A DNA stretch of 63,941 nucleotides, from the NCBI GenBank assembly GCA_013416795.1, contig RQSC01000808.1, positions 12,626 through 76,566 on the forward strand, given 5' to 3'. The notes below the pieces were generated by a model. It made no database searches, was not told the DNA's origin, and saw nothing but the letters and a program-made list of their open reading frames with translations. The translations under genes and the position numbers were made by a program. The DNA is from Prasinococcaceae sp. CCMP 1430. Lineage: Eukaryota > Plantae > Prasinodermophyta. Positions 1,045 through 54,525 of this stretch are shown in pieces; position 1 is the stretch's first letter, and every line of letters begins with the position of its first letter.

Positions 1045-1053
1045 GCTGCGTGC

Positions 1054-2709: not shown

Positions 2710-3592
2710 CATGGAGCGCGCGCACATACGTGCCCACGCGACGCAGCGCGACGCAGCGCGTGCGCGAGCGAGCGCGGCACACTCGCACATCATCGCCCGA
2801 AATGAGCACCCATTACCGTGCATGAGCTCGCACCTCGACTCGCGCGTTCCCGTGAGCGCGCATCACCTCATGCTGTCGTGCATGCCCAAGGCCATGCCAC
2901 CGCCGCCCACGCTCAAATTCATGCCATCGTCACGTCCATCAGCCGTCGGCCATGCAGCACCATTGTCGTCGCCCAGAGCTCGCCTACCACGGGTGGTCCC
3001 CTCCCCCTGGCCAGTACCCTTTCCTCCGCTGAGCGTGGACCCGTGCTGACGCGCCGCTCGGCGCACACGCAGTGCGCCGCCGTGCCGGCTGGCCGGCAGG
3101 CTGGTCGGGGAACGCAGCAGGGCCGCATGCCCAGTTTGTCCATCTTCTACCCCATCAATGCGTCTCGAATCCCACCCGAATACTCTCCTCACGTCCAGAA
3201 ATGTGAATCGTTTTCCCGCCGAACTCGTGAGCGCTTGGCTTGCGCGGTCGGGTCGCCCGATGCGGAAGGCGGCGGGTGGGCCGCAGGCTCGCCCTCTGGA
3301 GAGCCCCCTCTCGGCCGGCGCGGGTCGCGCGGGCTGGCGTGGCGGCAGCAGGCCGGCCGGCGCCAGGGCCCGTCGGGGCGACCTCCTCGCCGCGATGTGG
3401 GAGAGGGGGACGGTGGCGCGGGGGCGCACGTGTTCCTGCCGCGCGCGTTCGCGCGCGCTGACGGCGGCGGCGGCGCGCCGTCGGGTGGCGGCGCGAGCGT
3501 GCGCCTGGTACAGTATGTACAACATACTTCCTTACGATACAGTACACGCGCGCCGCGGCAGGGGAGGGACCGCTGCGGCCCACAGTCGGCGC

Positions 3593-4006
3593 TCAGCGAA
3601 GCTTGCACTGCATGTTGGGGCCGAAGACTTCCAGCGTCTTTGTGTGGCGCCAGCCGATGGTCTGCGACGTTGTCACTGGCGCGCTGTACGCCTCTGTAGG
3701 CTTCTTCGAGTTGCTGTACGCCTTGCGCTGCGATGCCGACATGTACGTCTCCAGCTGCAGGCGAACGTTGCCCTTGGGGAGCGCGTCCTCGCGCACAGGC
3801 AGGGTGCGCTGAAGCGCATCGGCCGAGCCGTTGGCGATGGCCTCTCGCGACTGCGTCTCAAGGGACTCAGCGTCGCCAGACTCGCGGAGGAAGCCCCAGT
3901 CGCGGTTCCAGTTCTTGCTCGCGAGGAGCTCGCTGCGCACGCGCCCGCGCCAGTTGGCGTCCTCAATTATGGCCGTCGTCTCCTTCGCGGTGTTCGCGTT
4001 CGCCAT
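3593..4006 (-). CDS. C20orf85/LLC1/CIMIP1-like ciliary microtubule inner protein
   Basis: MANANTAKE..EDANWRGRVRSELLASKNWNRDWGFL..PVTTSQTIGWR matches the recalled family motifs (D.IW+.R++.E..A..NW..+WGFL and P.TT+..IGWR). Confidence 0.75.
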   Translation of the reverse strand: MANANTAKETTAIIEDANWRGRVRSELLASKNWNRDWGFLRESGDAESLETQSREAIANGSADALQRTLPVREDALPKGNVRLQLETYMSASQRKAYSNSKKPTEAYSAPVTTSQTIGWRHTKTLEVFGPNMQCKLR

Positions 4007-4133
4007 GGCCTTGAGGAAGGATGGAGAGGGGCGGGGAGCGCTGGGGGGTGAGGCGCGCGGCGCGCGCGCGCTCTGCCGTGCCGTCGTCCGTGCCACCGCT
4101 CCAACCGCGCGGACAGTAGGGCAGACCTCTCAG

Positions 4134-4148
4134 AAAAACGCCGTTTTT
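4134..4148. promoter_or_regulatory. Perfect inverted repeat AAAAACG-C-CGTTTTT in the bidirectional spacer between the CIMIP1-like and coiled-coil genes
   Basis: Seen directly; function inferred from position only. Confidence 0.3.
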
Positions 4149-4411
4149 GGAACAGCGTCGGTTCAATGGCGTTCCCGGGCGCGCGCTGGGTGGATGGGGG
4201 TGGGGGTGGGGTAGGGGCAGCGGGCGCGCCAGAGGGCGGCAAGCGCGCGCGTCGCGCGTGGCGCCGCGTTCAAGGGCGGGGTCCACCACCACCGCCGCCA
4301 CCGCCACCACCCCACGCGCGCCGCCCTGCTTCGACTGCACCCCTCCGGTTGCTCCTGAGCCCGGGGCGGCCGGGCGGCGGCGCGCGGGTGCGCGGCTAGG
4401 CGCGAGCTGCG

Positions 4412-5959
4412 ATGTTCAAGCTGCGGAGCGTGCCGCGTGTGCCAATCGTGCCTGTCGAGGGCGTGCATGAGCGGCTACAGGGGTCGACTGCATTGAGAAA
4501 GACGGGGGCCAAGGGTGGCGCGCGGGATGGCGATGGCAGCTCGCTCGCGCCGGGCATCGCTGCGCGCGGATGGCAGGTGCAAGCGGAGGAATATCTGAAG
4601 GACGCGGCTGGCGGACGGTATCGCTCGACGGCCGTGCGCGCCGAGGTGCGCCTGATGGAGGCTCTGCAGCGGCAGCCGCCTAACACTGCCGAGGGGAGCG
4701 GTGGCGATGAGGGCGGGGAGAGGCCAGATGCCTACCGCACAGCCGTGTGCGCGCAGATGCTCACTGAATTGTGCTCCATCGCGGGGCCGTTCACAGGCGT
4801 GCTCGGCACCATACGCGACGAGCTCGTCAAGGCCATTTACTCAGAGTACTACCTGTCCACCAGCGGCGCGCTACACTTCGATCAGGTGCGGGGTGCGGGC
4901 TGTGTAGGGTCAGGTTGAAGCTTGCGCGCGCGCGAGCGCACCTGACTTGGGTGCACACACTTGCACGGTGTCCCTCTGGACGCGCGCGCCTCCATACCTA
5001 CCCACCCACCCACCCACCCGCCCACCACCACCACGCTACACGCATACCGATAGGTCCCGCACTTTGTCGTGGTGGGCAAGCTTGAGAATGATCTAGCAGA
5101 GATGGAGGCGACGCGGGACGCGTGGCGTCGGGAGCTCTTGGAGCACCAAAACGGCGTGGCGGCCATCGAGGGGCGACTGAGGGCGTTGGACGCGCGCGCA
5201 GCTGAACAGGACAGCACCATTGCCGAGCTGCGCACGGCCCTCGCCGAGGCTACCGAGCGATACGCTGCCTCCAAGGCGGAGGCCAAGACTTCGCGCGATG
5301 AGGCGAAGCGTGCGAGACGTGAGCTGCTCTCTGCAAAGGAGGCCATCGCGCGCGAGAGTCGCGGCACTAATCGCGACGGCTTTGTGGACGTCGCGGAGCA
5401 CGAGGCAATGCGCGAAGCGCTGCACGAAGCGCAGCGCGAGCTCGCAAAGGCGCTCGCAATGGCCAGCAGCCGCAGGGCCTTTGATGAGAACGCGCTCCAG
5501 TCGACCGAAGCCGCGCAGGAGCTCGAGTCGCTGCGCGAGGAGCGCGACAGCCTCAGGGAGGTGGTAGAAAGGATGGCTGCGTCTGGTCGCGACAGCATGG
5601 ATGTACCGACGCGCGAAGAGCTGAAGCACCAGACCGCCGCGCTCGAAGCCACCAAGGCGGAGCTCGAAACTGTGCGCGCGGAGATTGAGGCGCTGCGCTC
5701 GGGGCGAACCACCGCCGAGGGTGCGCTCGACGAGGCGAAGGAGCTGCTGGCGCCCGAGCCCGACTGCGTCGCCAGGGCTTCAGCGGCAGCGGCGGCCAGC
5801 GGCGACGCAGGCAATGACGGCGGCGGCAGCGGTGCCAGAAATCCTGGCCTAGAGCTGACGGGCAAGGTGGGTGCGTCCGAGGCCTCGGGAACGGCTCTCG
5901 GGACGCCCGGGGATGCCGCGGGAGCGCTCGCGCCGGGCAACTTGCCGGCGGTCGCGTGA
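4412..5959 (+). CDS. Long coiled-coil protein, possibly cilium-associated (N-terminal region weakly reminiscent of TSNAXIP1_N); 3' end uncertain
   Basis: Exon 4412-4885, intron 4886-5053 (GT..TAG, phase 0), then an exon from 5054 with heptad-rich E/A/R/L sequence. A possible further intron 5867-5980 carries a GCTAAAT branch site and ends CAG. Confidence 0.7.
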
Positions 5960-31606: not shown

Positions 31607-32594
31607 TCATCCCATCTGCGCCTCCCTGCGCATGACGTCCTCGTCAAACTTGACGAGGAAGACTGTCCGCGGCTTCGCCTGACCCTCCACGGGCACGGAG
31701 TGCGCGGTCACACGCGCACCTTTGAGGACACGCGCATGCGGAGGCGCGGGCGCACACGCGCGTGGCCCTGCGTCAGCTTCTGGAAGAGGAGGCGCGCGCC
31801 GGACGCGGCGTTGCGGAGCACGGAGGATCACTGTGGCCCGTGGCGGTACCGTGGGTGCTCCAGCACGCGAGGGCGGGCGCCACTGCGAACGCGCGAGCGT
31901 GGGCGCGAGGACTCACCAAACCCTGCGCACGCAAGCGCCCCGCGCACGATTCCGGCCGAGAAAGCTGCGCAGGAGAGTTGGCCCATGTCGCGCGGCACCG
32001 AGATGAGCCTGTCCATTGCGTGGTCCTCGTCCACGAGCATGTACTCATCCGCGGCGTTGTCGCCCTTCTCGAGCGCGTCGGCCGCGCGCCCGAAGAGCGT
32101 GCGCCACACCCCGCCCTGCACAAAGGCTACGCGCGGAGGGCCAGGTGCGGAAGTCAGAGCGCGCCCAGTGTGGCGCGATGCGGCAGGCGCGAGCGAGCGC
32201 TGGACACCGCGGGCACACACGAGCGCAGATGGGACAACGACTGCCGCAGGTGACCCTCGCACGCAGGTTTGCGCGCTGAGCGCGCGAGCGAGCGCGCTTA
32301 CCCAGCGCCCCTAGCAGCCTAATTTCCCTCCTCCCCGGCCGCTGCCTCGCTGCGACGAGCTCCATCGCGCGTGTGCCGACATCCGCGCCCGCATCCGCAA
32401 GGCGCGCCTCGAGCTCATCGCCTGTGGCTGCAGCGTCGCGTGCGCGCTGCACGACCTCCGAGAAGAGCAGCGCCAGCGCCGATGAGGTGGCTCGCTGCGG
32501 CAGCGGGAGATTGAGCGCTGGCCCTGCCGCCGCCGCCGCCGCGCGTGTTCCGCCGGCCCCCACCGCCGAGGGCGTCCCGCCCGCCGCCGCCCCG
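31607..32594 (-). CDS. TRAPPC5: TRAPP complex subunit 5 (Trs31); multi-exon, 5' end runs into a gap
   Basis: SALALLFSEVVQ, LEARLADAGADVG, REIRLLGAL, VWRTLFGRAADALEK..DEYML, ISVPRDMGQLSCAAFSAGIVRGAL..GF, ARVTAH, RTVFLVKFDEDVMRRE. Confidence 0.92.
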
Positions 32595-32682
32595 NNNNNN
32601 NNNNNNNNNNNNNNNNNNNNNNNNNNNNNNNNNNNNNNNNNNNNNNNNNNNNNNNNNNNNNNNNNNNNNNNNNNNNNNNNNN
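32595..32682. other. Assembly gap (88 N)
   Basis: N-run. Confidence 1.
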
Positions 32683-33708
<1,026 letters not shown>

Positions 33709-34513
33709 NNNNNNNNNNNNNNNNNNNNNNNNNNNNNNNNNNNNNNNNNNNNNNNNNNNNNNNNNNNNNNNNNNNNNNNNNNNNNNNNNNNNNNNNNNNN
33801 NNNNNNNNNNNNNNNNNNNNNNNNNNNNNNNNNNNNNNNNNNNNNNNNNNNNNNNNNNNNNNNNNNNNNNNNNNNNNNNNNNNNNNNNNNNNNNNNNNNN
33901 NNNNNNNNNNNNNNNNNNNNNNNNNNNNNNNNNNNNNNNNNNNNNNNNNNNNNNNNNNNNNNNNNNNNNNNNNNNNNNNNNNNNNNNNNNNNNNNNNNNN
34001 NNNNNNNNNNNNNNNNNNNNNNNNNNNNNNNNNNNNNNNNNNNNNNNNNNNNNNNNNNNNNNNNNNNNNNNNNNNNNNNNNNNNNNNNNNNNNNNNNNNN
34101 NNNNNNNNNNNNNNNNNNNNNNNNNNNNNNNNNNNNNNNNNNNNNNNNNNNNNNNNNNNNNNNNNNNNNNNNNNNNNNNNNNNNNNNNNNNNNNNNNNNN
34201 NNNNNNNNNNNNNNNNNNNNNNNNNNNNNNNNNNNNNNNNNNNNNNNNNNNNNNNNNNNNNNNNNNNNNNNNNNNNNNNNNNNNNNNNNNNNNNNNNNNN
34301 NNNNNNNNNNNNNNNNNNNNNNNNNNNNNNNNNNNNNNNNNNNNNNNNNNNNNNNNNNNNNNNNNNNNNNNNNNNNNNNNNNNNNNNNNNNNNNNNNNNN
34401 NNNNNNNNNNNNNNNNNNNNNNNNNNNNNNNNNNNNNNNNNNNNNNNNNNNNNNNNNNNNNNNNNNNNNNNNNNNNNNNNNNNNNNNNNNNNNNNNNNNN
34501 NNNNNNNNNNNNN
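33709..34513. other. Assembly gap (805 N)
   Basis: N-run. Confidence 1.
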
Positions 34514-36359
34514 GGCGACGCCGACCGCCTCGAGGCGGCCGCGGGGGAGCTCAGGCGGCTCAGCGTCGCGCGCGGCACGGCAGACCACGGCCCCAACCAC
34601 GCCGCCCCTGAATCCACGAAGGAGCGAGTTCTTGCGTCTGCACTGCTTCCCGATGTGCTGTGGCAGCGCGTGCTGGGGGAGGCTGGCGCTCGAGCGTGCT
34701 GTGCGGCAGCGCGCTCGTGCACCGACCTGCGGCGCGCGGCATGCGCGCGTGGCGTATGGGACGCGCTTGCGCGCGGCGTCTTCGGCGACGCTCGCGACAC
34801 ATTTGCAAATGGAGGTGCACACAGCGCCGCCGCTGCGCGGCGGCACGCGCAAGCGAGGCGGCGCTCCGAAGAGGATGTGACCACCCCGGAGCTGCGTCGC
34901 GCCGTGCGCCGCTCCGAATTGCGTGCGGCGGCGTGGGAGGGCCTCACGAGCGGCCGGCATACCGACGAGGCGCGCTGGAGCGACGTGGGTGGCCTGAGTG
35001 CCTCTACGCTCTGGCAGGACGGAACCGTTGGGCTCGCGGCCGAGGGCAGGCAGCTTCGGCTCTTCGAGGTGTGTGCGCGCGCGGACTCGCGCGCGCACAT
35101 GGATGCACTCAGGCGTGTGGGCGCGCATGCTTCGCGTGCGCGTTGGAAGACCAGGCGCGTCCTGACCGCGCGGCGCAACCCTCTCTCGTGACGAAGGTGT
35201 CCTCAGGGCGCCGACTCTCCACTTGGCAGCAGCGCTCGGGCGCGCCGCTGAGTTGTGTAAGCGTCACCGGAGGCGTTTGCGCTGTCGGCGACGCATCGGG
35301 CGGCGCTCTCGTGCTCGACCTCGAAATTTCGCCGCTGGAGCCCATAGCTGGCGCGCAGCAGGCGGGCTGCCTCGCGGCAAAGACTACGTGCGTGTGCGAC
35401 ATCGAGTGCCTCGGCGCTGGGCGAGGCGTGCTGGCTGCCTTGCGTGGAGGGGATCTCGTCCATTGGCGGCCGCATGACTTTGTGCACGAGGCTTTCGGTG
35501 ATGGCGCGCACTCGGACTCGCGTGCGTGCAGCCCCGCCGCGGTGTGCTGCGTGGGCTCGACACGCGCGGAACTCGCAAATGAGGCAATGCACTGGACATG
35601 CGCTGGCGTCGGGTTATGGGACGTGCGCACCGGCATGCAGGTGTGGCAGAGCACGGTACGTGCGCGCGCGCGCATGCACGCGCGCACGCGCGCAAACGGT
35701 CACGCATGCCGCGTAACACTCGCTTGTAGCATTGCGCGGGTGGGCGCTGACGCCCGCACACATCGCCGTGTTGCCTCGCACAGGGCACCATCGGCTCGGC
35801 ACACTCGGCTCTGGCGGACATGTTCGAGTCGCGCGATCGCGCCGCGTCCGAGCTGGCGGCTGCCGCGCACGGTGGCAATCAGCACACCGCCGCTGTCGAC
35901 GCAGCATCCTGCACGCACCTGCTCGCTCAACTGAACGAGAATACTTGCGCCGCGGCATGTGCGGGCGGCTTTAGCCTGTGGGATGCGCGCGTGGGCTGCG
36001 TAGCTCACGCTGCGCCATTGGCTGGCACGCTCGCTCACGCTGCTCGTGTCCGCGCACCACGCTGGGTGGAGACGAATGCGCATCACTTGGTGTTGGTGCA
36101 GGCGGAGGGCGGTGCGGCGGTGGGCGTGGATGTGCGGGCGCTGCCCTCGGGCCGCGCGGCAACAGCAGCGCTCACTCTGCGCCCGCGCGCCACCGAGGGC
36201 GATGGCAGCTGCGCAGTGGGCGCTCGCGGTGGGCGCGTGCCGCTCGACGCGGCCTCGCTGACCTGCGTGCGTGTCAGCAGAGACTCGTGCACGGGCGGGG
36301 AGGTGGTGCTTGCGGGCATGGGTCCGCGGCATCCTCTGTTGCGATTACACCTCCCGTGA
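34514..36359 (+). CDS. Putative F-box plus degenerate WD40/beta-propeller protein; multi-exon, 5' partial
   Basis: LLPDVLWQRVLGEAGARACCAAARSCTDLRRAA (F-box-like); later beta-strand repeats LSCVSVTGGVCAVGDASGGALVLDL, GVGLWDVRTG, GFSLWDAR; likely introns ~35070-35185 and ~35657-35780. Confidence 0.5.
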
Positions 36360-36490
36360 GCGCGTGGTAGCCTGTGTACATCTACAAATTCGTTTGGTAC
36401 GCTTACATGACAGGGTGTCGTCCACAGACTTGCGCTTGCATCGAGTGCGCCGCTTGGATGACCCCGCGCCCCGCGGCCACGCCCCGATGC

Positions 36491-39109
36491 TCAGTACGGC
36501 AACGACGCCAAGTACATCGGCGATTGGGGGCGCTCGTCGGCGCTCACATCACCTGCAAGGGCATCGCCTGCGAGCGCGGGGTCCATCTCGTAGTCGTCGG
36601 GTCCCTGCTGGGACAGTTGCCTCGGCGCCGCGGCGAGGTCTTGCGACTCGTCCGGCTGCGGGTGGCTGAGCTGTCTGGTGTGTGTGTGCTCGTCGAACTG
36701 GGCCCCGAGGCGCGCTCGGGCCCGCGCGACGCGATGCTTGACGAGCCACTGCCCCAGCCGGCTTCTCTTCGATGCGCGTTTGCTCCATAGCCGCGGGGTG
36801 CCCTGGACGGCCTTGTTGTTGAGCGCCCCCCACATCTGAAACAGCGTGAAGCGCACGTGCGTCCGCAGGAAGTGCCGCAAGCGCCGGCGAGCATCGCCCC
36901 CGCTCGCAGACGGCCGCACGATCTCGGACGTGATTTCGTCCACGCCAGCTCCGGCTGCGGCGAAGTCGGGATTTGTTTCCGCATCGCTTTGCTCGCACTC
37001 ATCCCCCTCAGTTGCATCCCAGTGACGATTGAGGACGGTGGTTGTGGCATCGCCTTCGACCTTGCGCGGAGATGTGCTGAGGTCGGCGGTGGCCTGCTCA
37101 TTGATATGCTGCTGAGCCTCGAAGAACATGTGAGGCACATCACCGAAGTCGGCCGAGAGGTCGCTCAAGACAGCGCCCACGATTTCTCCCTGCGACGAAG
37201 GCTCAAACAAGCAGTCAAACATTCCGACATCCTGGGAGCTCAGCACGGGCATGGCGCCAGGGGAGGTCGGGGCACCACACGTGTCCTCCGTGCCGAATCC
37301 AGGCAGCGGCTCGTCAGCGCTGAGCTCGTGTATCTGCGAAAGGCCCTCGAGGGGAGCACCGCTGGCGCCAATGTTGTCCTGCGATGCAGGGAACTCGTAC
37401 GCCGGGTCCAGAACGGGCACCTCTTCGACGCCTACGCTGAGACCGCTTCGGAGCAGATCGATGCGCTTGCAGAGCCGCAGCATGCCCGCCGTTGTCTTCG
37501 CCGCGCTTCCCCTCCCGTCGAAGGGGTCGACGTCGAGTAGGCTCCAGCCCGGATGAAGTGGCTTCAGCCAGGCTTTGTACGCCTCCTCCGTGAGCCTGTT
37601 GAACTCGTCGCCCTCCGCCGTGCCATCGGCAATCTTCCAAATCTCGGTGATGATCGGGGACTTCCAGGGCGACTTGTCCGCCCTCTTTTTGCCCTTGGTC
37701 TCCCCGGGCTTGACCATCGCGAAGGGGAACTGTCGGTCGTCAAACATGAGCACGGCCAGCGGCATGGCCTTGGTATCATTGGCCGGGTCGACACCCTCCG
37801 GCCAGCGGGCGTAGCATCGCGGTTTGCTCCGCTCCATGACGTACGCGGTGCACTGCGCTAAGATCTTCTCGAAGGAGCACGAGTCGACGCCCGACGCCAA
37901 GCACACGCCACTCGCACCCTCGGGGTGTACCTTGACGGCGCGAAGAAACTCTGCGACGGTCGCAACCTCACCCTCATCCGTGCCTCCGCCCACGTTCGCA
38001 GCACTCTCGCCGCCTTCTGCGGCGGCCAGCGTTTCGCGCACCGCCGTAGTAAGCATGCGCGCGCGCGCTTTCTCCACATTGTTCGCCTGCAGCAGGGAGT
38101 CGGTGAGCAACAACTTCTTCGGCTTCTGGAATTCTTCCGAGCGTCTCATCTTGACGTCGAAGTCCGTGCTCGAGCGCGCCCCCATGATGCCGTGGTTCGG
38201 CTTGCCCCGGCGAGGCCCGTCGCCGTGCAGCACGCGCACGCCGAGGCGGAACCTGCTCGTTTCTCCCCGCGAGTGCGAAGTGATGTGCATGGTCAACGGA
38301 AGCGTGGCGATAGACTCGCCCTTTTTGAGCACCGTGATGTTGTCCTTGATCACGTCGTTCTTGTACACGTGTGCGTCGAACGTCTCCCCGTCATAGACGT
38401 CGCTGACGAAGTCTGGCTCCAGCACGCACGCCTCGAGCACCAAGTCGTGCGGCGCGGGGCACTGGCGCCCCTGCGAGTCGCATAGGATCACCTGCAGCGG
38501 CGAGTTGCACGGCGCGTGCAGCAGCGCGCCTGTGAAGGGCTCCTCTTTGTCGCCGAACGTGTGCTTCGCGATGAAGTAAGCGCTCCGGAAGTGGCGGCAC
38601 GCGCGGTCGGTCACCTGCGCACAGAAACCGCAGTCCGGGCGCTCGCAGAACGGGTAGCGCTTGATACACGTGTGCGAGAACTGAAGGCGCAGGTCGCCGT
38701 ACGTGTGCGCTGCCTCCATGTCCGAGTTCACTGCGAGCTCTCTGTGGTCCAGCTGCGCCGCGGCGCGCGCCCTGAGCGCCTTGTCGACCTTGAGCGACGC
38801 CAGGAAGCCGCGGCAGCGCCAGATCGTATACAGCTCCAGGTACGAGGCCGACATGTTTTGCATCAAATCAGTGACCTCCTTCGACTTCCACGCCTGAGGC
38901 GCCCAGCCGTCCTTCATGGGCTCCGAGCCAGGCACTACCAACGCGGACGGCACGGCGGGGGTAGCCGGCCCACGCTTCTTCGCCCTCCTGCCCGCCGCGG
39001 GCGCCGCCGCGGGCCGCTTCGGCGGGCGCCCGCTCGTTCCTTCGCCGCCGGAGCAGCGCAGGGCGGCTTCCGCAGCGGTCTCCGCGCGCGTGGCAGGGCG
39101 GCCTCCCAT
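36491..39109 (-). CDS. CBP60/SARD1-like calmodulin-binding transcription factor (N, middle and C domains) with a disordered tail
   Basis: LRLQF..EPFTG..PLQVILCD; LEACVLEPDF; ETFDAHVYK; VLKKGES; SRFRLGVRV; DFDVKMRRSEEFQK; TVAEFLRAV..LASGV..FEKILAQCTAYV; LTEEAYKAW; C-terminal basic RRRLRHFLRTHVRFTLFQMWGALNNKA. Confidence 0.82.
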   Translation of the reverse strand: MGGRPATRAETAAEAALRCSGGEGTSGRPPKRPAAAPAAGRRAKKRGPATPAVPSALVVPGSEPMKDGWAPQAWKSKEVTDLMQNMSASYLELYTIWRCRGFLASLKVDKALRARAAAQLDHRELAVNSDMEAAHTYGDLRLQFSHTCIKRYPFCERPDCGFCAQVTDRACRHFRSAYFIAKHTFGDKEEPFTGALLHAPCNSPLQVILCDSQGRQCPAPHDLVLEACVLEPDFVSDVYDGETFDAHVYKNDVIKDNITVLKKGESIATLPLTMHITSHSRGETSRFRLGVRVLHGDGPRRGKPNHGIMGARSSTDFDVKMRRSEEFQKPKKLLLTDSLLQANNVEKARARMLTTAVRETLAAAEGGESAANVGGGTDEGEVATVAEFLRAVKVHPEGASGVCLASGVDSCSFEKILAQCTAYVMERSKPRCYARWPEGVDPANDTKAMPLAVLMFDDRQFPFAMVKPGETKGKKRADKSPWKSPIITEIWKIADGTAEGDEFNRLTEEAYKAWLKPLHPGWSLLDVDPFDGRGSAAKTTAGMLRLCKRIDLLRSGLSVGVEEVPVLDPAYEFPASQDNIGASGAPLEGLSQIHELSADEPLPGFGTEDTCGAPTSPGAMPVLSSQDVGMFDCLFEPSSQGEIVGAVLSDLSADFGDVPHMFFEAQQHINEQATADLSTSPRKVEGDATTTVLNRHWDATEGDECEQSDAETNPDFAAAGAGVDEITSEIVRPSASGGDARRRLRHFLRTHVRFTLFQMWGALNNKAVQGTPRLWSKRASKRSRLGQWLVKHRVARARARLGAQFDEHTHTRQLSHPQPDESQDLAAAPRQLSQQGPDDYEMDPALAGDALAGDVSADERPQSPMYLASLPY

Positions 39110-39944
39110 CGTACAAGGCCGCTCGCGCGCTTCGAGAGCCCGTGGCGACCCTGCCCGCACGCCCCCCCCCCTGGCCGCCGCCGGCCTGCGCCGCCCTGTA
39201 GGCGCGGCCCGACGACTGTCGCCGGCGCCTTTCCCAGCGCACACACACGCACACACGCGCGCACACACACGCGCACGAGCGTGCGTTCTGATGGCGCCCC
39301 GCCGGCGCCGCGCCGCGCGTGCGTTCTGATGGGCGCTCAAACGCCTCCGCGCGATCGCGCGCCCCCGCGCCCCGCGCGCCAAAACCCCCGAAAAACACCC
39401 GAAAAAGCGCGACGGGCCTCGCAATCGGAGGGGCGCCTCCCCGCACGGGAGACACGTGAAACGACCCGAGAAATGCGCGACGCCACCAACCGACGGCCGG
39501 CCGGCTTGTCCGTCCGGAGTTAGGGGTTTTATTGAGGTGTAGACAATAGGGTTCGATACCCCTTCAAACACCTCATCAATTCTCATCATGGCGTGTCCGT
39601 TCGCGAGCGACAACGCAGCGTTACGAGGGACGTCAACATTACCCACGGGCGCTACCATCGGCGTCGGCCGTGATGTGATGGTGATCGAAAGCCTGCCGCC
39701 GGCGGTAGGGTTTGGCAGGCAGCCGGCCTGCACCTGAAGCCCTCGCCTGCGTGCGCGCGCGCGCGGCGCGGCGCGCGTGGATTCCGCCTCATTTTAGTGT
39801 ACTATGAATATGAGGTTCCTAAATTCTTGAGAATTTTGAAGTATCCAGAAGGAATCCATTGCCGTTGCGGGACGGGCGAAAAGCGCGCGGGCGCGGGCGG
39901 GCTGGCGCGGGCGCCACAGGGCTCGGGTGCGCGGCGGGGCGGCC

Positions 39945-39990
39945 NNNNNNNNNNNNNNNNNNNNNNNNNNNNNNNNNNNNNNNNNNNNNN
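39945..39990. other. Assembly gap (46 N)
   Basis: N-run. Confidence 1.
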
Positions 39991-41213
39991 CCGGGCCGCG
40001 AGCAGCGCCGCGGCGTGCGCGGCCGGTGGCGGCGGTGGCGGCGGTGGGAGGCGAGGCAGAGCCGTGGAGCGTCGCAGGTAGGTGGTGCGTTGTGACGGGG
40101 GCAAACACGGGCATCGGCAAAGAGGTGGCGCGTGGGTTGGTTCGTGAGGGCGCCAAAGTGGTCCTCGCGTGCCGCGATGCCGACAAGGCCGCAGCGGCTG
40201 CAGCGGAGCTCGCGGCGATGCCCGGTGCCGACGAAGTCGAGACCGCCGTGCTCGACGTCGCGTCCCCAGCAAGCGTGCGCGCCTTCGCGAAGAGCTTTCG
40301 ATCCTCGGGTCGTGAGCTGCTCTTGCTCGTCAACAACGCGGGCATCATGGGGCAGCTGCCGGAGCTGAGCATGCCTTTCGCGAAGAACACGTTCCCCTAC
40401 CATTTTGATGCCGAGGCGTACGAGCGCATGCGCGAGTACGACCCGGCGCTGTGCACCAACTATCTCGGGCCGTTTCTGCTCACGTACGAGCTGTTGCTGT
40501 CGCCGGGGGCGGCGGAGTATTGTCACCCCCGGGCGCGCGTGGTCAACGTCGCGAGCGACGCGCACTACCGCGGCGAGGTGCGCTTTGAGGGCGGAAGGCT
40601 CGTCACGACGCAGCAGTGGTCGGGGCAGCTGGGCAAGTTCAAGGACGACTGGTACGCGGCGTACGCGCGCTCGAAACTGTGTCAGATGCTCTCGACCGTC
40701 GTCTTCAACCAAAAGATGGTCGAGGCCGGGCGGAGCTGCTGCGCGCTCGCCGTGTCGCCCGGTCGCACCAGGACAGAGCTTATGCGCCACGTCGACGACC
40801 ATCGCTCCGGCATTCTCGGCGCGCTCGCGCCGTTTGCCAAGAGCTTCCAGCCGGTGGAGAAGGGCGCCGAGACGGTCGTCTGGGCGTGCGTTGGAGCCGA
40901 GCTCTGCGCGGATGGCCCGGAGATGACCCACTACCTCGAAAACATGGACGAGGGCTGGGCGGCTGAGGAGGCTGGCGACCTCGAGGTCGGCCAGAAGCTG
41001 TGGGACTGGTCGTGCAAGCTGATGGGCATCAATTTCGAATTCGCGGCGACCGAAAGCGGCGATGCCGGGCTGCGCGACCCGCGCACGGGCCTCTTTTTCG
41101 ACCCCAGCGCACCGCGCGGCGAGGCGGCCGCCGCGGAGTACGTACCCATCGACTGGGCGGCGATGAATGACGACTCCCAAGAAGACGGCGTCATCGACGC
41201 GAGCGTGCGGTAG
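39991..41213 (+). CDS. Short-chain dehydrogenase/reductase, RDH12/WWOX/TIC32-like; 5' end in the gap
   Basis: VVTGANTGIGKEVARGL, LLVNNAGIM, TNYLGPFLLT, RVVNVASDAH, YARSK (YxxxK), AVSPG, EKGAETVVW. Confidence 0.9.
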
Positions 41214-47895: not shown

Positions 47896-50541
47896 TCACT
47901 TGATGAGCTTGGCGAGCCACGGCAGCTCCTTGTCGGCTCGCGCCGCGAGCCCCAGGTCGGCGATGGACACGTTGAGCCCCACCTTGGCCCGCGCATGCCG
48001 CCTGTCGCCGTTCTCCAGCAGCAGCAGCCGTGAGGCGCCCATGCGCTGGACGGCGGCGTGCAGCGCGCCCGAACCGGCCGGAGGCAGCGGCAGCGCGTGC
48101 GCCTTGCACAGCTCGGCATGCGAGCGCAGCACGGTGCCGACCTCCGTCTCTTGCACGCCCGCTCGTTGCGTCTCTCTCGCGACAGCCGCCATGAGCACTC
48201 GCTCGTGCAGGGAGAGCGACATCACGGACTTCACGGCCGCGCCCTCGAACATCTCCTTCACGGCGGCATTCACGTCCTTGATGGTGGCCATCTCGCCGCC
48301 GCGCTCCTCGGTGCACTCGGCCGCGCGACGGCACATCTCCAGCGCGCGTCGCACGTCGCCGCTCACGGCTGCCACCTTGCGGCTAGCGAAGTCCACCGCC
48401 TCGGGCGCGAACGCGCCCTCGCACGCGCCGAGGCGCGCGCGCACGATCTGCTCGATCTGCTCGCGCACGTAGGGCTGGAAGGGCGTGCGGCGCAGCCCCG
48501 CGCGGCTGAGGATGCGCGGGAGCAGGCGCTCGGGAAGGTCCATGGTGTTCGCGATGCCGATCACCGCGAGGCGAGGCACGCCCTTGCGCGGCGCCGCCAG
48601 GGACCACTCGAAGAGGTTGTACAGCACCTCCTGGCGGCGCGTCACCAGCGAGTCGAGCTCGTCGACGACGAGGAGCGTCGCGGGCGCGGCCGTCGCGTCG
48701 GCTCCCCGGCCCGTGCCGCCGGCCTTGCCGCGCTTGGCCGAGCCCGCCGCCCAAGCGCCGCCCGCCGCCGGCGTGAAGCGCTCCTGCAGCAGGTCGAGCG
48801 CCTGCGAGGGCCCCACGTAGTGGCCGTGCAGTGCCTCGTAGATCGAGCTGTACGCGTGTTGGGGCGATGGCAGCCGCAGGCCGTTGATCATCACCAGCTG
48901 GAAGGGCGCCTGGTTGGCCTCCTTTGCCTCCTTCCTGGCGGCGCGCATGACCTCCATGACCGTGGCGGTCTTGCCGGTGCCGGGCACGCCCGAAATGTAC
49001 AGGCAGCGCCCCGCACCCGCGCCCGCGCCCGCTCCCACTATGCCCTTGACGAACGAATGCACCGCCTCGCGCTCCTTCTCGCGACACGGCAGGCTCGCGG
49101 GCAGGGCGGCGAGCTGCAGCATCTCCCTCGCGCGCTGCAGGGGCGTGCGCTTGCGGTCCCGCACCCACTGCGGGATGGCCTGCGCGCCCATGCCGTACAC
49201 GCACGACGCGGCACCCGCCGCCTCGGCGTCCTCGAAGCCCATCGCGCGTCGCGCGGAGGCGCCCGCGCGACCGTTGGCGGCGCGCGCGCTCGCCTTGCTG
49301 CGCGAGCCGCCCGCGCCACCCTTGGCGCTCGCGCCCTTCCCACTGCCCTTGCGGCCGACGCGCTTGCCCGTGCCGCCAGCCAGGGCGCGCTCGCGGCGCC
49401 TCTCCATGCGCGGATCGAACGCGCGCGCGTCCTCATCGCCCTCGTCGTCGTCGTCGCTCCCCGCCCAGTCGTCGTCGGAGGCGTCCTCGGCGTCGCTCCA
49501 CTCCTCGCGCTCGCCCTCCGCCCTGCGTCTGAAGCGCTGCCAGCCGGCGTCATAGTCGTACTCGCACATGTACACATCGTCCTTGTTGACGCGCGCGTAC
49601 ATCTCGAGCTCCGCGGTGGCGTCCCCGATCGCGTGGTTGTTGGCCATCGCCTGGAAGGCGGCCCGCCCGAGCACGCACGCGACGCCCGTCGCGCTGGCGA
49701 CCTCCTGTGCGTCGACGTGGTTGGAAAGGAAGACCTCGCGCCGGCCGTGGTGCGGCTGGCGGCCGGGGCCCGTGTGCTCGGGCTTGTAGAACCAGCGCCC
49801 GCTGAACATCTCGGTACCATCGGCCTCGCGCCAGATGGCCTCGATGCGCGCAAGCTCGTACTGGTGCGCGAGGAACTTCTCGCGCGGCGTGCGCGCGCAG
49901 CCGCGTCCGCCGCCGGCGGCCTTTGCGTCGGCGCAGGCGGAGGCGCCCGCACGGGCGGCGGCCTCGCCGTCCCCGACTTTGACGCTCCCCACGCACTTGG
50001 GGCAGAACCAGTCGCCCTCGGGCACGCGCGTGAGCTTCGGGCGCAGGCAGTCCAGGTGGTAGCCACCCAGGCAGCCGTCGCACTCGAGCATGACGTCCTT
50101 GCCGGGCGCGTCGCATGCGAGGCCGCACACCTCGCAGAGGTCCTCCGCCTCGTCCTCGGCGACGTCGCCGTCCATGCTCACGTACACAACGTCGCCGATG
50201 CGCACTTTGGTCTCCCAGCCGTCGCTCAGCGCCACCTGGCGGAGCGCGACACGCTTGGGGCCGCGAGGCGCCGGCGCCTTTCCCCTTGCCTTGCCCTTGC
50301 CGTTGGCGATCGCCTTGCGAGCCTGCTTGGCCTTGGGTGTGGGAGGGGCCTTGGGCGAGGGAGAGGCGCTCGGCTCGTCATCATCCTCGTCCGAACTTCC
50401 TGCATCCCCAGCGTCGAGCTCCTCAACGGCATCCTCGAACTGGTCGTCGCTCTCGGAGTCGCCGCGCGCGGTGGCGGCGGCGGCGGCCTTGGCGGCGCGC
50501 GCCCTACCCCGTGCGGCGGCCGNCACGTCCGCAGCCGCCAC
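47896..50541 (-). CDS. ORC1: Origin recognition complex subunit 1, plant type (BAH with inserted PHD, AAA+, winged helix); ATG probably hidden at the N at 50523
   Basis: PHD CEVCG..MLECDGCLGGYHLDCL..W.CPKC; BAH GRWFYKPE..RREVFLS; LPCREKE; LYISGVPGTGKT; VDELD; YNLFEW; IGIANTMDLPE; GDVRRALEMCRRA. Confidence 0.95.
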   Translation of the reverse strand: MAAADVXAAARGRARAAKAAAAATARGDSESDDQFEDAVEELDAGDAGSSDEDDDEPSASPSPKAPPTPKAKQARKAIANGKGKARGKAPAPRGPKRVALRQVALSDGWETKVRIGDVVYVSMDGDVAEDEAEDLCEVCGLACDAPGKDVMLECDGCLGGYHLDCLRPKLTRVPEGDWFCPKCVGSVKVGDGEAAARAGASACADAKAAGGGRGCARTPREKFLAHQYELARIEAIWREADGTEMFSGRWFYKPEHTGPGRQPHHGRREVFLSNHVDAQEVASATGVACVLGRAAFQAMANNHAIGDATAELEMYARVNKDDVYMCEYDYDAGWQRFRRRAEGEREEWSDAEDASDDDWAGSDDDDEGDEDARAFDPRMERRRERALAGGTGKRVGRKGSGKGASAKGGAGGSRSKASARAANGRAGASARRAMGFEDAEAAGAASCVYGMGAQAIPQWVRDRKRTPLQRAREMLQLAALPASLPCREKEREAVHSFVKGIVGAGAGAGAGRCLYISGVPGTGKTATVMEVMRAARKEAKEANQAPFQLVMINGLRLPSPQHAYSSIYEALHGHYVGPSQALDLLQERFTPAAGGAWAAGSAKRGKAGGTGRGADATAAPATLLVVDELDSLVTRRQEVLYNLFEWSLAAPRKGVPRLAVIGIANTMDLPERLLPRILSRAGLRRTPFQPYVREQIEQIVRARLGACEGAFAPEAVDFASRKVAAVSGDVRRALEMCRRAAECTEERGGEMATIKDVNAAVKEMFEGAAVKSVMSLSLHERVLMAAVARETQRAGVQETEVGTVLRSHAELCKAHALPLPPAGSGALHAAVQRMGASRLLLLENGDRRHARAKVGLNVSIADLGLAARADKELPWLAKLIK

Positions 50542-50597
50542 GAGGCTAAGGTTTTCGCCCGCCCCGCGCGCGCGCGCCCGCGCGCGCCCCCCCGCCG

Positions 50598-50610
50598 TTT
50601 CCCGCCAAAA
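50598..50610. promoter_or_regulatory. Overlapping double E2F site TTTCCCGCCAAAA upstream of ORC1
   Basis: TTTCCCGC on + and TTTTGGCGG on -; ORC1 is an established E2F target. Confidence 0.65.
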
Positions 50611-50629
50611 TCCGGTTCGAGATCAATAC

Positions 50630-50638
50630 AAACCCTAA
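50630..50638 (+). promoter_or_regulatory. Telo-box AAACCCTAA upstream of ORC1
   Basis: Seen directly, 20 bp from the E2F site. Confidence 0.5.
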
Positions 50639-51373
50639 CTCACCAAAGCTCTAACCGTAAATCAAACCTGAACATGACGACCAACAACCTTTCAAGCTTT
50701 CAATACTATGGTGCGGCAACCGCATTGCAGGAGACCATATGCATGCCAAGCTGACACCCAACCACCAACACACCAACCAACCAACCACCCCGACCACCCG
50801 AGCCCCCGACCAACTGGCTTGGCAGGCTGGCCGGCTTTTTATCCGCGCTCTATCTGCTGAGCGCAGATCGTTATCCGGCCGGGCGCCTGCGTGCAGCCCT
50901 GGCGGCCGCCGCCTCCGAGCCTCGGATGAAACGCTCGGTCGGTCGGGCACGCTGCGCCGCCGGCCGGACGAGCACACGCCCGCCACCATCACGTCATGCG
51001 GGGGCAAAAAAACGCTTCCGTGAGGCCGGGACAAAAAACGCTTCTGCGCGGCGTATCGGTTGTCTTCTGGGAAATTCTGCTGCCGGTCGCGTTGAATTTG
51101 ATACGGGACCCCACCCGCAGCGCAGAATAACGGGTTCCCCGAAGCAATAGTGTGGACGCGGCAGTTTACCACGTGGGGCGTGGGGCCCGACCGCTCGCGG
51201 GGAGGAGGGACGCGGCGGTCGTTGCGTTCGCCGACGCGGTCGTTACGCCCAGCAGCAGCAACGGCCGCGCTGCGCGCGGGCTGCTGCGCGCGGCGCGGCG
51301 CCCGTCCGGCATCCACCGACCGACCGACGCGCACCTCGGCCGCCGCCCGTCGCGCCGAGAAGCCGAAAGCCGA

Positions 51374-51787
51374 NNNNNNNNNNNNNNNNNNNNNNNNNNN
51401 NNNNNNNNNNNNNNNNNNNNNNNNNNNNNNNNNNNNNNNNNNNNNNNNNNNNNNNNNNNNNNNNNNNNNNNNNNNNNNNNNNNNNNNNNNNNNNNNNNNN
51501 NNNNNNNNNNNNNNNNNNNNNNNNNNNNNNNNNNNNNNNNNNNNNNNNNNNNNNNNNNNNNNNNNNNNNNNNNNNNNNNNNNNNNNNNNNNNNNNNNNNN
51601 NNNNNNNNNNNNNNNNNNNNNNNNNNNNNNNNNNNNNNNNNNNNNNNNNNNNNNNNNNNNNNNNNNNNNNNNNNNNNNNNNNNNNNNNNNNNNNNNNNNN
51701 NNNNNNNNNNNNNNNNNNNNNNNNNNNNNNNNNNNNNNNNNNNNNNNNNNNNNNNNNNNNNNNNNNNNNNNNNNNNNNNNNNNNNNN
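51374..51787. other. Assembly gap (414 N)
   Basis: N-run. Confidence 1.
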
Positions 51788-52119
51788 CGGGGGGGGACGG
51801 TGTGTGCGCGAGGGCGAGCGGCGGCGCGGGCTGGCGGCGGCGCGCGGGCGCGCGGCGGTGCGCTGGTTTGGATGGAGCCGAGCGCGCCAGGCCCAGGCGG
51901 GCGTTACAAGCGTGCTGACACGCATCTCCCCCCTCCCCTCCTCCTCTTCCCCGCCCGCATGGCCTCCATTTCCTCCCCCTCTTTCCCCTCCGCCCCCATC
52001 CATCCTCCCCCCACCCCCACCCCCTTCCCCTCCTCGGCGTCCCCGTGCGCCCCACCCCACCCGCGCCACGGCCCACCGCACCCGCCCCACCACCCCGCGC
52101 AGACGCGACACTCGGTGCA

Positions 52120-54525
52120 ATGAGCGAGGAGCAGATGGACGCGGTCCTTCGAAAGCGCGCGCCGCATCTGCGCGTGGCCGTCGCCGGGAGCTTCTCGTCG
52201 CTGACCGGGAGCTTCTCATCGCAGACCGGGAGCTTCTCGTCGCCGAGCTCGCTCTCGCCGAAGACGCCGCGCACGCTGGAGTCATCGCCGCGCTCGCCCT
52301 CGCCATCAGCCGGCTCGTTCTCAGACTCGCCCAAGCGGGTTTTGGACGCCACGGGTCGCAAGCCCACCGATCATGAGCAGGTGCGGCGAACCAATAGCAC
52401 GGGCGCGCCATCCGCGCTCGTGCGCGCCCGCGCCCACGCGCCGGGCCTCGCCGCGCCCACTGCCCCCCTCCGTCCCTCGAGTGCAGTGAGTGTCTCAGCC
52501 TCTGACTGCGGCGGCCCCGTCCTTCCTCCGCCCCGCTGATACACCAACCCAACCGCGCAGACGATGCTCCGCGAGATGGCCACGAAGGCGCCCCTGCTGT
52601 CGTGCCTGAACGCAACCGAGCGCTCCATCGTGGTGGCGCGCTTGGTGCGTCACGAATACACCGACGGCGACATCATCGTCGCCCAGGGCGAGCGCGGAGA
52701 CCACTTCTACCTGCTCACCGAGGGAGACGTCGAGGTGACGTCGAGCGGCGAGGCGAGCGCGGGCGCAGGCGTGGGCCGCAATGGCAGGGGTGATCTTGCC
52801 AGGGCCAGGATGGAGAGCATGGGGGGTTCGGCCGACGAGAAAGGGGAGGAGGTGCACAGGATGCTCGTGCCGGGCGACACCTTCGGCGAGCTCGCGTTGC
52901 TGTACTCGGGCGTGCGCACCGCGACATGCACGGCGCGGGGCGGGCGCGTGGTGTGCTTTGCCCTTGCTCGCCAGACCTTCCGCGCGGTCGTGCAGAAGAC
53001 CGCGATGGAGCGCCGCCGCACCAACCTGAGGATCATCAACGGCTGCAGGTTGTTGATGGCGCTCAAGCACTACGAGCGCAATAAGCTGTGCGACGCAATG
53101 CACCCGGTAGACTACGCCGCCGGCACACACATCATCAAGCAGGGCGACGCCGCGTCGGCGGCGTTCCACATCATTGTGAAGGGCGAGGCCGCCGTCGTCC
53201 TGGCGGACTCACCCGATGAGGTGTTGAAGACCATGGAGGCGGGTGCCTACTTCGGCGAGGTGTCTCTGCTAGCGGACACTCCTCCGACGGCGACTGTGAT
53301 TGCCGCCACCGATCTGCGCTGCCTGACGATTGAATCGTCAACGTTCCTGCGCCTCGTGAGCTCCGCCGAGCGCCTCTTCGAGTCGAAGATGGACCGCTAC
53401 GCCTTTGACGCGAGCTCTCCCGCCAGGAGGCTTTCGTCGCGCTCCAAGTCCGTGACGAACTTGATGACGTCGATGTCTCTGAACGGCGGATCGCCCGCGC
53501 GCGCCGACTCGGAGGGACCGGTCTGGCCGCGCGTGGATCCCAAGACCACGCCCGTGCTCTCGGAGCTAGGCTCTGGCTGCACCGCGTGCGTATACATGTG
53601 CCACCTCGACCGAGATGGCATGGGCTCGCACGGGGTGGCCATGAAGGCGGTCACCAAGAAGGCGATCGCCAACCACCCCAAAAAGTTCAAGCAGGTTGTG
53701 CGCGAGACGCACGCGCTCAGCGTGGTGCGGTCTCCTTTTGTGGTGCACCTGGAGGGCAAGGGCCAGGACGACGCCTGCCTGTACCTGGCCATTGAGCTTG
53801 CCGACGGTGGCACGGTGTTCGAAATGCTCAGCTCGCTCTGGCAAGCCGGGCGCGTGCTCAGCATCGATGCCGCCAAGTTCTACATGGCCGAGACGGTCGC
53901 GGCGATCGAGCATGTCCATCGGGCGGGTTACGTGCACCGCGACATCAAGCCGGAAAACATCCTTCTGGACAGCATGGGTCACGTGCTGCTGTCAGACTTC
54001 GGCTTCACCAAGCAGCTCGACCTTGGCGACACCACCTTCACGTTCTGCGGCACGCCAGACTACCTGGCCCCGGAGACGTTAATCAACTCGGGCCATGGCC
54101 ACGGCGTCGACTTCTGGGCGCTGGGCGTGCTACTGTACGAGATGCTCTGCGGCGTGACGCCCTTCCAGGAGGACGATGAGATGAAGATGTATTCGCGCAT
54201 CATGTTCTCGTCGGTTTGGTTTCCCGACGAATTCGACCCGGCCGCGAAGAGCCTCGTCGCGGGACTGCTCGAGCGGGACGTCACGAAGAGGCGCGGGCTC
54301 ATGAAGGGGGGGATCGACGACATCAAGTCGCACGCCTTTTTCGAGGGGGTGGACTGGACCGCCGTGAACAACCGACGCATGCCCCCGCCGTACGTCCCAG
54401 GACCAATAACGCCGCTTTCGCCGGCGCAGCGGCAAGCGAAGAGGCCGAACTTGTCGGATCTCACAGAGGCAGACACGACTCTCGAGTACTCAAAGGAGCA
54501 CATCGCCTTCTTCGAGACATTCTGA
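52120..54525 (+). CDS. cGMP-dependent protein kinase-like (two cNMP-binding domains + AGC kinase)
   Basis: Exon 52120-52380, intron 52381-52560, exon 52561-54525. CNB-A FGELALLYSGVRTAT; CNB-B FGEVSLLADTPPTAT; kinase VAMK, HRDIKPEN, DFG, TFCGTPDYLAPE, DFWALG; terminal FFETF. Confidence 0.9.

Follow-up and report, generated by a model that had tools for sequence, protein, structure and literature searches.

A gene with a CBP60-type conserved domain and a His/Cys insertion in a prasinodermophyte alga

At positions 36491-39109, on the minus strand of the window (the whole 63,941-nucleotide stretch of contig RQSC01000808.1 analyzed here), lies a real, transcribed, intronless gene whose product is related to the CBP60 proteins of land plants. 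In plants, immunity and salicylic-acid synthesis are under the control of the master regulators CBP60g, SARD1, and CBP60b. The open reading frame (ORF) listing and its translation give a coding sequence of 872 amino acids (aa) plus stop, without an intron, from an ATG at 39109-39107 to a TGA at 36493-36491. A sequence-only reading of the window had proposed these same limits, and they are right: the positions of the ATG and TGA fit, and RNA contigs span 36383-39156. In culture RNA run X16 the contigs cover 36405-38971 and 38997-39156, and in culture run X17 they cover 36383-38031 and other parts. The contigs of both runs are colinear with the gene, without gaps or joints, and RNA depth falls to zero at 36000-36261 and 39275-39900. 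The transcription unit can be laid out as follows:

36491..39109, minus strand: coding sequence, 872 aa (ORF and translation, codon-position GC)
36383..39156, minus strand: transcribed region, with about 47 nucleotides (nt) of 5' untranslated region and about 108 nt of 3' untranslated region (RNA assemblies)
36403..36407, minus strand: TGTAA pentamer, a possible poly(A) signal, about 20 nt upstream of an RNA contig end (contig ends at 36405 and 36383)

The TGTAA pentamer may represent the green-algal type of poly(A) signal. The longest ORF at the locus spans 36491-39733 on the minus strand, and the ATG at 39109 and the intronless model are supported by RNA coverage, codon-position GC, and an upstream microsatellite. 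Within the coding sequence, G+C at the first, second, and third codon positions is 0.65/0.50/0.83, whereas the in-frame stretch upstream of the ATG is flat at 0.68/0.68/0.70. A longer start at up to 39733 (1080 aa) was dropped, as it would have no RNA past 39156, no codon periodicity, and a GT-rich microsatellite inside. This imperfect GT/GC-rich repeat (GTGTGTGC-type) occupies 39235-39286, about 130-180 nt 5' of the start codon and just beyond the RNA-covered region, and it was left out of read mapping as a repeat. Ocean metatranscriptomes X18 and X19 also contain fragments of the gene. It recurs with 99% identity on a Tara Oceans contig, which shows nine synonymous and five non-synonymous codon differences, and all five of the latter fall in insertions or in the linker described below.

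The relationship to CBP60 emerges from a chain of homologs. An exhaustive phmmer search with aa 60-580 against 1.84e9 representative proteins returned only two proteins: P0016 (E=1.7e-44), which is an uncultured marine protein, and P0017 (1172 aa, E=2.6e-6), whose cluster bears the EukProt name Prasinococcus capsulatus. The latter clears the Pfam family Calmodulin_bind (PF07887) with 43.3 bits, the gathering score being 25.5 bits, and just misses Calmod_bind_M (22.4 bits vs 24.5). The cores of these three algal proteins were aligned (A1), a plant sequence was added (A2), and the gene product was also aligned pairwise with P0016 (A3). The plant sequence, P0018, is a 665-aa land-plant CBP60 which scores 194, 114, and 79 bits for Calmodulin_bind, Calmod_bind_M, and Calmod_bind_C, respectively. 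It was the sole plant CBP60 returned by the profile search, in which the A1 profile found it at E=6.6e-7 among 5.8e9 sequences. Aligning A1 with P0018 by hhalign (probability 97.8%, E=7e-13) yielded 212 colinear columns, which cover residues 96-321 of P0018 and thus its N and M domains. BLASTP of the protein against P0018 gave E=7e-6 over 168 aa. With a profile made from the query and P0016, P0017 scored 51 bits and P0018 13.5 bits, against 7.5 bits for the best of 10,000 shuffled decoys. When aa 186-335 were isolated, Calmodulin_bind was the best of 24,736 Pfam models, reaching 23.6 bits (E=6.3e-5) with a match to positions 13-127 of its 147-position profile. In protein-language-model features, CBP60 clusters rank first (0.94; 211 of 256 features in common). 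Profile homology thus extends over both the beta-sandwich (N) and the helical (M) parts, which are homologous to the CBP60-conserved domain (region aa ~138-530).

The sequence-only reading had recognized this homology from short motifs, all of which are present and in the order quoted in the translation of 36491-39109: LRLQF, PFTG, LQVILCD, LEACVLEPDF, ETFDAHVYK, SRFRLGVRV, FDVKMRRSEEFQK, TVAEFLRAV, ASGV, FEKILAQC, TEEAYKAW, and FQMWGALNNKA. The plant motifs it had set beside them are close to those of P0018, which reads LPLFTG, IRVVLKD, LEVVVLDGDF, EDFERNVVK, RKFRLGVRV, FTVKDHRGELYKK, TVVDFLRF, GSGM, WEATVEHA, and VKVAYENW at the corresponding places. From N- to C-terminus, the protein is organized into the following parts:

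38969..39028, minus strand: bipartite basic stretch, aa 28-47, KR-x10-RRAKKR, resembling a nuclear-localization signal (NLS), in a basic, Pro/Ala-rich N-terminus (translation)
38741..38914, minus strand: N-terminal region, aa 66-123, kept in P0016 (pairwise alignment A3)
38585..38698, minus strand: first beta-strand LRLQF and His/Cys cluster (alignments A1 and A2)
38105..38554, minus strand: beta-sandwich core, approximately Pfam Calmodulin_bind (the DNA-binding part of CBP60), containing FRLGVRV (PF07887, BLASTP, hhalign, AF2 model)
37838..38104, minus strand: helical middle part, approximately Calmod_bind_M, containing TVAEFLRAV (hhalign through P0018 residues 260-321)
37520..37837, minus strand: C part, approximately Calmod_bind_C by position and topology (Foldseek matches colinear to plant residue ~400-415; secondary structure of the model)
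36896..37519, minus strand: acidic linker, aa 531-738, net charge -26, probably disordered (composition)
36707..36895, minus strand: basic region, aa 739-801, net charge +17, opening with the amphipathic RRRLRHFLRTHVRFTLFQMWGAL; candidate calmodulin-binding site
36572..36613, minus strand: C-terminal tail motif SQQ-P-DYEM-P-L, invariant with P0016

Residues 1-60 have a net charge of +8, and the KR-x10-RRAKKR stretch would serve as a nuclear-localization signal. In the following region (aa 66-123), W74, E78, V79, M83, Q84, Y90, E92, Y94, T95, and R98 are invariant with P0016. The conserved domain then opens with the LRLQF strand, and between this strand and the FTG strand there is a ~45-aa insertion which holds H146, C148, C155, C160, and C163, then C171/H173. 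The first five of these residues are invariant in 3/3 algal proteins (A1), and the plant sequence P0018 has a gap in their place (A2). Because the cluster has a C-x4-C-x2-C core, its spacing suggests a zinc knuckle, and the chances that it binds zinc seem evenly balanced. Further on, the M part carries a ~28-aa Gly/Ala/Glu insertion (aa ~355-383). The C part is laid out as three strands, an insertion (aa ~467-500), and a helix ending in AYKAW..HPGWS. The acidic linker (208 aa) is poorly conserved with P0016, and may act as an activation region. Within the basic region that follows, RRRLRHFLRTHVRFTLFQMWGAL has the highest helical hydrophobic moment (0.64) among all basic 18-mers of the protein, and the candidate calmodulin-binding stretch (aa 739-770) has a net charge of +5. 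Here R743, L744, R745, F747, R749, H751, R753, F754, W760, G761, and L763 are invariant with P0016.

Structure prediction extends the comparison toward the C-terminus. The AlphaFold (AF2) model built on A2 has a mean predicted local distance difference test score (pLDDT) of 54, with 70-82 in the beta-sandwich and values below 50 at the His/Cys cluster. When this model was searched by Foldseek against Swiss-Prot, eight Arabidopsis family members and cotton CBP60B took ranks 1-9 (E from 1.6e-11 to 9.9e-9), with model residues 1-447 colinear with plant residues ~70-415 and the next match at 8e-4. A second model, made as a control from the three algal sequences alone (without the plant sequence), put the same nine CBP60/SARD1 entries on top (1.9e-11 to 5.4e-10; next match 9e-5). 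In a shape search of the ESM Atlas, CBP60 clusters again came first, and a Calmodulin_bind cluster model superposed over 146 residues at 3.6 A. Foldseek against the Protein Data Bank (PDB) yielded generic beta-sandwiches only, none at E<=1e-3. The low-confidence models assign the fold to the CBP60 family, with global template-modeling (TM) scores of only ~0.3. They also show the strands and terminal helix expected of the C part, where pLDDT is mostly <60. From this topology, the C part is probably the equivalent of Calmod_bind_C.

The sequence-only reading thus finds much of its proposal borne out. The presence of a homolog of the CBP60-conserved domain holds on four counts: hhalign at 7e-13, BLASTP at 7e-6, the isolated segment at 6.3e-5 for PF07887, and the nine leading Foldseek entries. 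The description "complete, all three domains" stands for N and M, which sequence comparison supports; for C it leans on low-confidence models and topology. The HMMER check that had been suggested gave a sub-threshold PF07887 score on the isolated segment (23.6 bits) and no match to Calmod_bind_M or Calmod_bind_C, and the suggested AlphaFold check placed the nine CBP60/SARD1 entries first with pLDDT of ~51-54 and TM of ~0.3. The label "SARD1-like" has to be given up, as nothing links the protein to the SARD1/CBP60g clade over CBP60 in general. That clade is dated to around the divergence of angiosperms (10.1101/2020.07.16.207134), and because of this date membership of the algal protein in the CBP60g/SARD1 immune subfamily is very unlikely.

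Taken together, the gene product very probably belongs to the CBP60 superfamily, though strongly diverged, and acts most likely as a nuclear, sequence-specific DNA-binding regulator. In this architecture, the basic NLS-like stretch and then the conserved helical segment lead into the CBP60-conserved domain. The domain begins with the beta-sandwich, which includes the FRLGVRV strand, continues with the helical middle, and closes with what is probably a small C part of strands and a helix. The invariant His/Cys4 cluster, probably a zinc knuckle, is inserted after the first strand, with more insertions in the middle and C parts. Next come the ~200-aa acidic, probably disordered linker, a potential activation region, and then the conserved amphipathic helix of basic character. 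If the protein has a site for Ca2+/calmodulin or for some other regulator, this helix is the best candidate. In Arabidopsis, the conserved domain of SARD1/CBP60g binds to GAAATTT-type sites, and the algal domain probably binds DNA as well. Regulation by calmodulin through the C-terminal helix is conceivable, if somewhat doubtful. A role in stress or antimicrobial responses is quite unlikely on present evidence, and a link between the algal protein and salicylic acid or immunity would be speculation. The Ca2+-calmodulin-CBP60 circuit put forward in the sequence-only reading likewise reaches further than these results.

Several points weigh against this reading. The full-length protein matches no Pfam family at E<=1, probably because of the insertions after the first strand, in the M part, and in the C part. 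The PF07887 score of aa 186-335 falls 1.9 bits short of the gathering score, which P0017 does reach, and the M and C segments searched alone give no direct Pfam match. In the C subdomain, hhalign aligns only 11 columns, exactly TEEAYKAW/VKVAYENW, at E=0.21, which is not significant by sequence alone. The algal alignments comprise three or four sequences only. Both AF2 models are of low quality, with mean pLDDT values of 54 and 51 and a predicted TM-score of 0.38; global TM-scores against CBP60 models stay at ~0.3, and Foldseek E-values include amino-acid similarity and hence are not independent of the sequence evidence. Moreover, no solved relative came up in the PDB, either by phmmer with the query core or a plant CBP60 or by Foldseek, leaving no CBP60 structure on which DNA-contacting residues could be checked. 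As to calmodulin, RRRLRHFLRTHVRFTLFQMWGAL is absent from P0017, which ends in a coiled coil, and belonging to the family is no proof of calmodulin control, as SARD1 reportedly does not bind calmodulin.

One could ask whether the resemblance to CBP60 is mere coincidence, or whether an unrelated orphan has converged on a generic Ig-like beta-sandwich. The missing whole-protein Pfam match, the TM-scores, and the generic beta-sandwiches returned from the PDB (E>5e-3) would all fit, as would a direct phmmer comparison of the core with P0018, which gives 10.5 bits vs 9.2 for the best shuffle. This explanation is nevertheless extremely improbable: the transitive chain is significant at each step (query to P0017 to Pfam, and A1 profile to P0018), the 212 hhalign columns run colinearly over two Pfam domains, and the isolated segment scores in Pfam. 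In addition, the nine CBP60 entries lead the next Foldseek match by 5-7 orders of magnitude in two independent models, and FRLGVRV is invariant. Far closer to the assignment favored here is a CBP60-fold DNA-binding protein that would not be under calmodulin, with the basic helix acting as a second NLS, a nucleic-acid patch, or a partner docking site, and with the His/Cys cluster or phosphorylation supplying control. This stands only slightly below even chances. Lys and Arg make up 29% of the basic region (aa 739-801), and this content and the net charge of +17 are also typical of NLS and nucleic-acid-binding tails; the motif of the region is replaced by a coiled coil in the Prasinococcus protein; by sequence, the basic helix finds no counterpart in the calmodulin-binding helix at the C-terminus of P0018; and the CBP60 literature puts calmodulin-binding sites outside the conserved domain, varying by subfamily. 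Calmodulin binding is favored instead by the top hydrophobic moment among basic 18-mers, by the bulky anchors F, L, V, F, and W, kept in P0016, and by the placement of the motif after a long linker, like the C-terminal calmodulin-binding domain of CBP60a-f.

It could also be proposed that a streptophyte CBP60 reached this scaffold by horizontal transfer or contamination, in which case it would be silent on the age of the family. A patchy distribution would fit, as neither the literature nor the searches made here revealed the family in Chlorophyta. Such an origin is very improbable, however. The G+C of the gene (~0.66 vs ~0.68 for the window) and its intronless structure agree with the scaffold, which consists of compact, mostly intronless eukaryotic genes, and ordinary housekeeping genes lie on both flanks. 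Copies 99% identical are found in Tara Oceans contigs, and also in many DNA runs of the same organism. Identity to plant CBP60 is only 22-27%, and the derived Cys cluster is common to the Prasinococcus homolog, from a second class of the phylum. Since the cluster is common to two prasinodermophyte classes, any transfer must be older than their split.

Further searches for relatives were also made. Word-indexed homolog searches with the query and with P0017 gave only self-matches, the length range allowed for P0017 leaving out plant proteins. Back-translated A1/A2 patterns, run twice on metagenomes and once on viral sequences, confirmed no relatives, a result of little weight as the patterns are weak. 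A Chlorophyta cluster without Pfam match (language-model score 0.86) was dropped as a chlorophyte homolog, as it was gone when the query was trimmed to the core; in the core-only search, the top unnamed cluster scored 0.74 (Ciliophora). By the same kind of features, the oomycete Pfam family DG1062_N scored 0.65, which is a lead to possible relatives outside the green plants.

The remainder of the window holds several observations in their own right. The BAH-PHD cassette of ORC1 is a plant-type feature. The ORC1 homolog at 47896-50541 (minus strand) has a PHD at aa 136-183 and a BAH at aa 226-337, before its AAA+ and winged-helix parts, and its N-terminus matches the BAH-PHD cassette of Arabidopsis ORC1b (PDB 5hh7) at E=5.6e-37. 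A run of N (assembly gap) at ~39950-40000 lies between the CBP60-like gene and the short-chain dehydrogenase gene at 39927-41213 (plus strand), and the ORFs across it contain 16 X. G+C drops to 0.52-0.56, vs ~0.68, in the stretches 32001-36000 and 50001-52000. The first of these is overlapped by the ORF at 32759-35191 (plus strand), with a nitronate-monooxygenase fragment and a Somatomedin-B domain. An intronless kinase at 52564-54525 (plus strand) has tandem cyclic-nucleotide-binding domains preceding its kinase domain, as in the cGMP/cAMP-dependent protein kinase type. For a RUS-type protein encoded nearby, the ESM Atlas gave an ambiguous taxonomic signal, diatom and streptophyte clusters ranking highest.

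The host was described by the sequence-only reading as an early-diverging green alga, which agrees with the only named source of a close relative of the protein, Prasinococcus capsulatus. The NCBI taxonomy places that species in Prasinodermophyta, in the class Palmophyllophyceae, beside Prasinodermophyceae, and the phylum branches before the chlorophyte/streptophyte split. The case for a prasinodermophyte host is strong, if circumstantial, and the genus is very probably Prasinoderma; the Cys-cluster variant is thus very probably present in at least two classes of Prasinodermophyta. A homolog in this phylum, if inherited vertically, means that the family predates the chlorophyte/streptophyte split, as had been suggested. 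The simplest reading is that the CBP60 domain was already in the common ancestor of green plants; it would then have been lost in Chlorophyta or have diverged there beyond recognition.

In the literature, CBP60 is termed plant-specific, with none in Chlamydomonas, Volvox, or brown algae and the first in mosses and ferns (PMC11049924, PMC12089773). Only land plants are included in the large CBP60 phylogeny of Zheng et al., and algae are unmentioned in CBP60-DB. A CBP60 ortholog is listed for the streptophyte alga Chara braunii in a 2024 preprint, while the Prasinoderma genome paper (PMC7455551) mentions neither CBP60 nor calmodulin. No paper on a chlorophyte or prasinodermophyte CBP60 was found in the searched literature, so the view that these were undocumented holds. 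Because the Prasinococcus protein P0017 has a precomputed PF07887 match in a public collection, the datum is already in databases, though undiscussed. A CBP60-type protein in Prasinodermophyta shifts the origin of a supposedly land-plant family to the root of the green plants. This is unexpected for CBP60 specialists, yet the pattern is familiar from many plant transcription-factor families. The result extends the phylogenetic range of the family and adds a new architectural variant, a branch of CBP60 which Pfam thresholds overlook. The gene provides a single-copy, intronless, unicellular model for the role of the CBP60 domain before land-plant immunity, and its His/Cys4 insertion and non-plant C-terminal helix are concrete, testable differences from plant CBP60.

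A broader scenario can be drawn, although it is unlikely as a whole. Early CBP60 would have been a zinc-cluster transcription factor under Ca2+/calmodulin, present at or before the root of Viridiplantae, and coupling Ca2+ transients (viral or bacterial attack, abiotic stress) to defense or stress transcription. Prasinodermophytes would have kept it, chlorophytes would have lost it, and streptophytes would have lost the Cys cluster. If this were true, the Ca2+-calmodulin-CBP60 axis would be roughly a billion years older than land-plant immunity.

Among known systems, a comparison can be made with Rel-homology/p53-like beta-sandwich DNA-binding domains. The weak structural matches to the sandwich include NF-kB p65, a velvet regulator, and a STAT-type SH2 protein, and the LAG1 DNA-binding domain scores 0.62 in the language-model search. 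These matches are not significant (E>1e-3, TM<0.25) and are a hint on fold class, not evidence of membership. The closest relative is P0016 (958 aa, on Tara Oceans contigs of 67-69% G+C), which is 34% identical over its whole length and has the same architecture: N-terminal helix, Cys cluster, acidic linker, basic amphipathic motif, and DYEM tail. P0016 has no Pfam match, and tblastx shows no synteny between its locus and the window. The Prasinococcus capsulatus proteins P0017/P0019 (EukProt EP00958, 1171-1172 aa) have the same His/Cys4 insertion, FRLGVRV, and HP.WS. P0017 passes Calmodulin_bind and hence is less diverged from plants than the protein studied here, but a long coiled coil takes up its C-terminal half, and the RLR.F.R.H.RF...WG.L and DYEM motifs are missing there; G+C at its locus is 52-57%. 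On a Prasinococcus-type metatranscriptome contig of 5.8 kb (positions 1-5767), a CBP60-like gene is accompanied by a convergent 589-aa gene without Pfam match, which points either to a compact genome whose genes overlap at their 3' ends or to carry-over of DNA.

Finally, the comparison with land-plant CBP60 itself (Arabidopsis CBP60a-g and SARD1; PF07887, PF20451, PF20452) brings out both differences and common features. Identity is only 22-27% and the Pfam thresholds are unmet by the algal protein, which has 872 aa vs 450-650 aa in plants and differs by its ~45-aa His/Cys4 insertion and by the further insertions in the M and C parts. The His/Cys4 insertion, overlooked in the sequence-only reading, is lineage-specific as judged from the alignments, and separates the algal proteins from plant CBP60s. 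The algal C-terminal helix is without sequence similarity to the calmodulin-binding helix of P0018 (BLASTP), but it sits where CBP60a-f have their C-terminal calmodulin-binding domain, after a variable linker. CBP60b-type proteins are laid out likewise, starting with a basic N-terminus and reaching a basic amphipathic helix after a long linker. In plant and alga alike, the beta-sandwich is followed by the helical part and, as far as fold and topology show, by the small C part, with the motifs FTG, (V)VL.(P/G)DF, E.F..HV, FRLGVRV, F.VK..R, TV.(E/D)FL(R), and AY..W in common.

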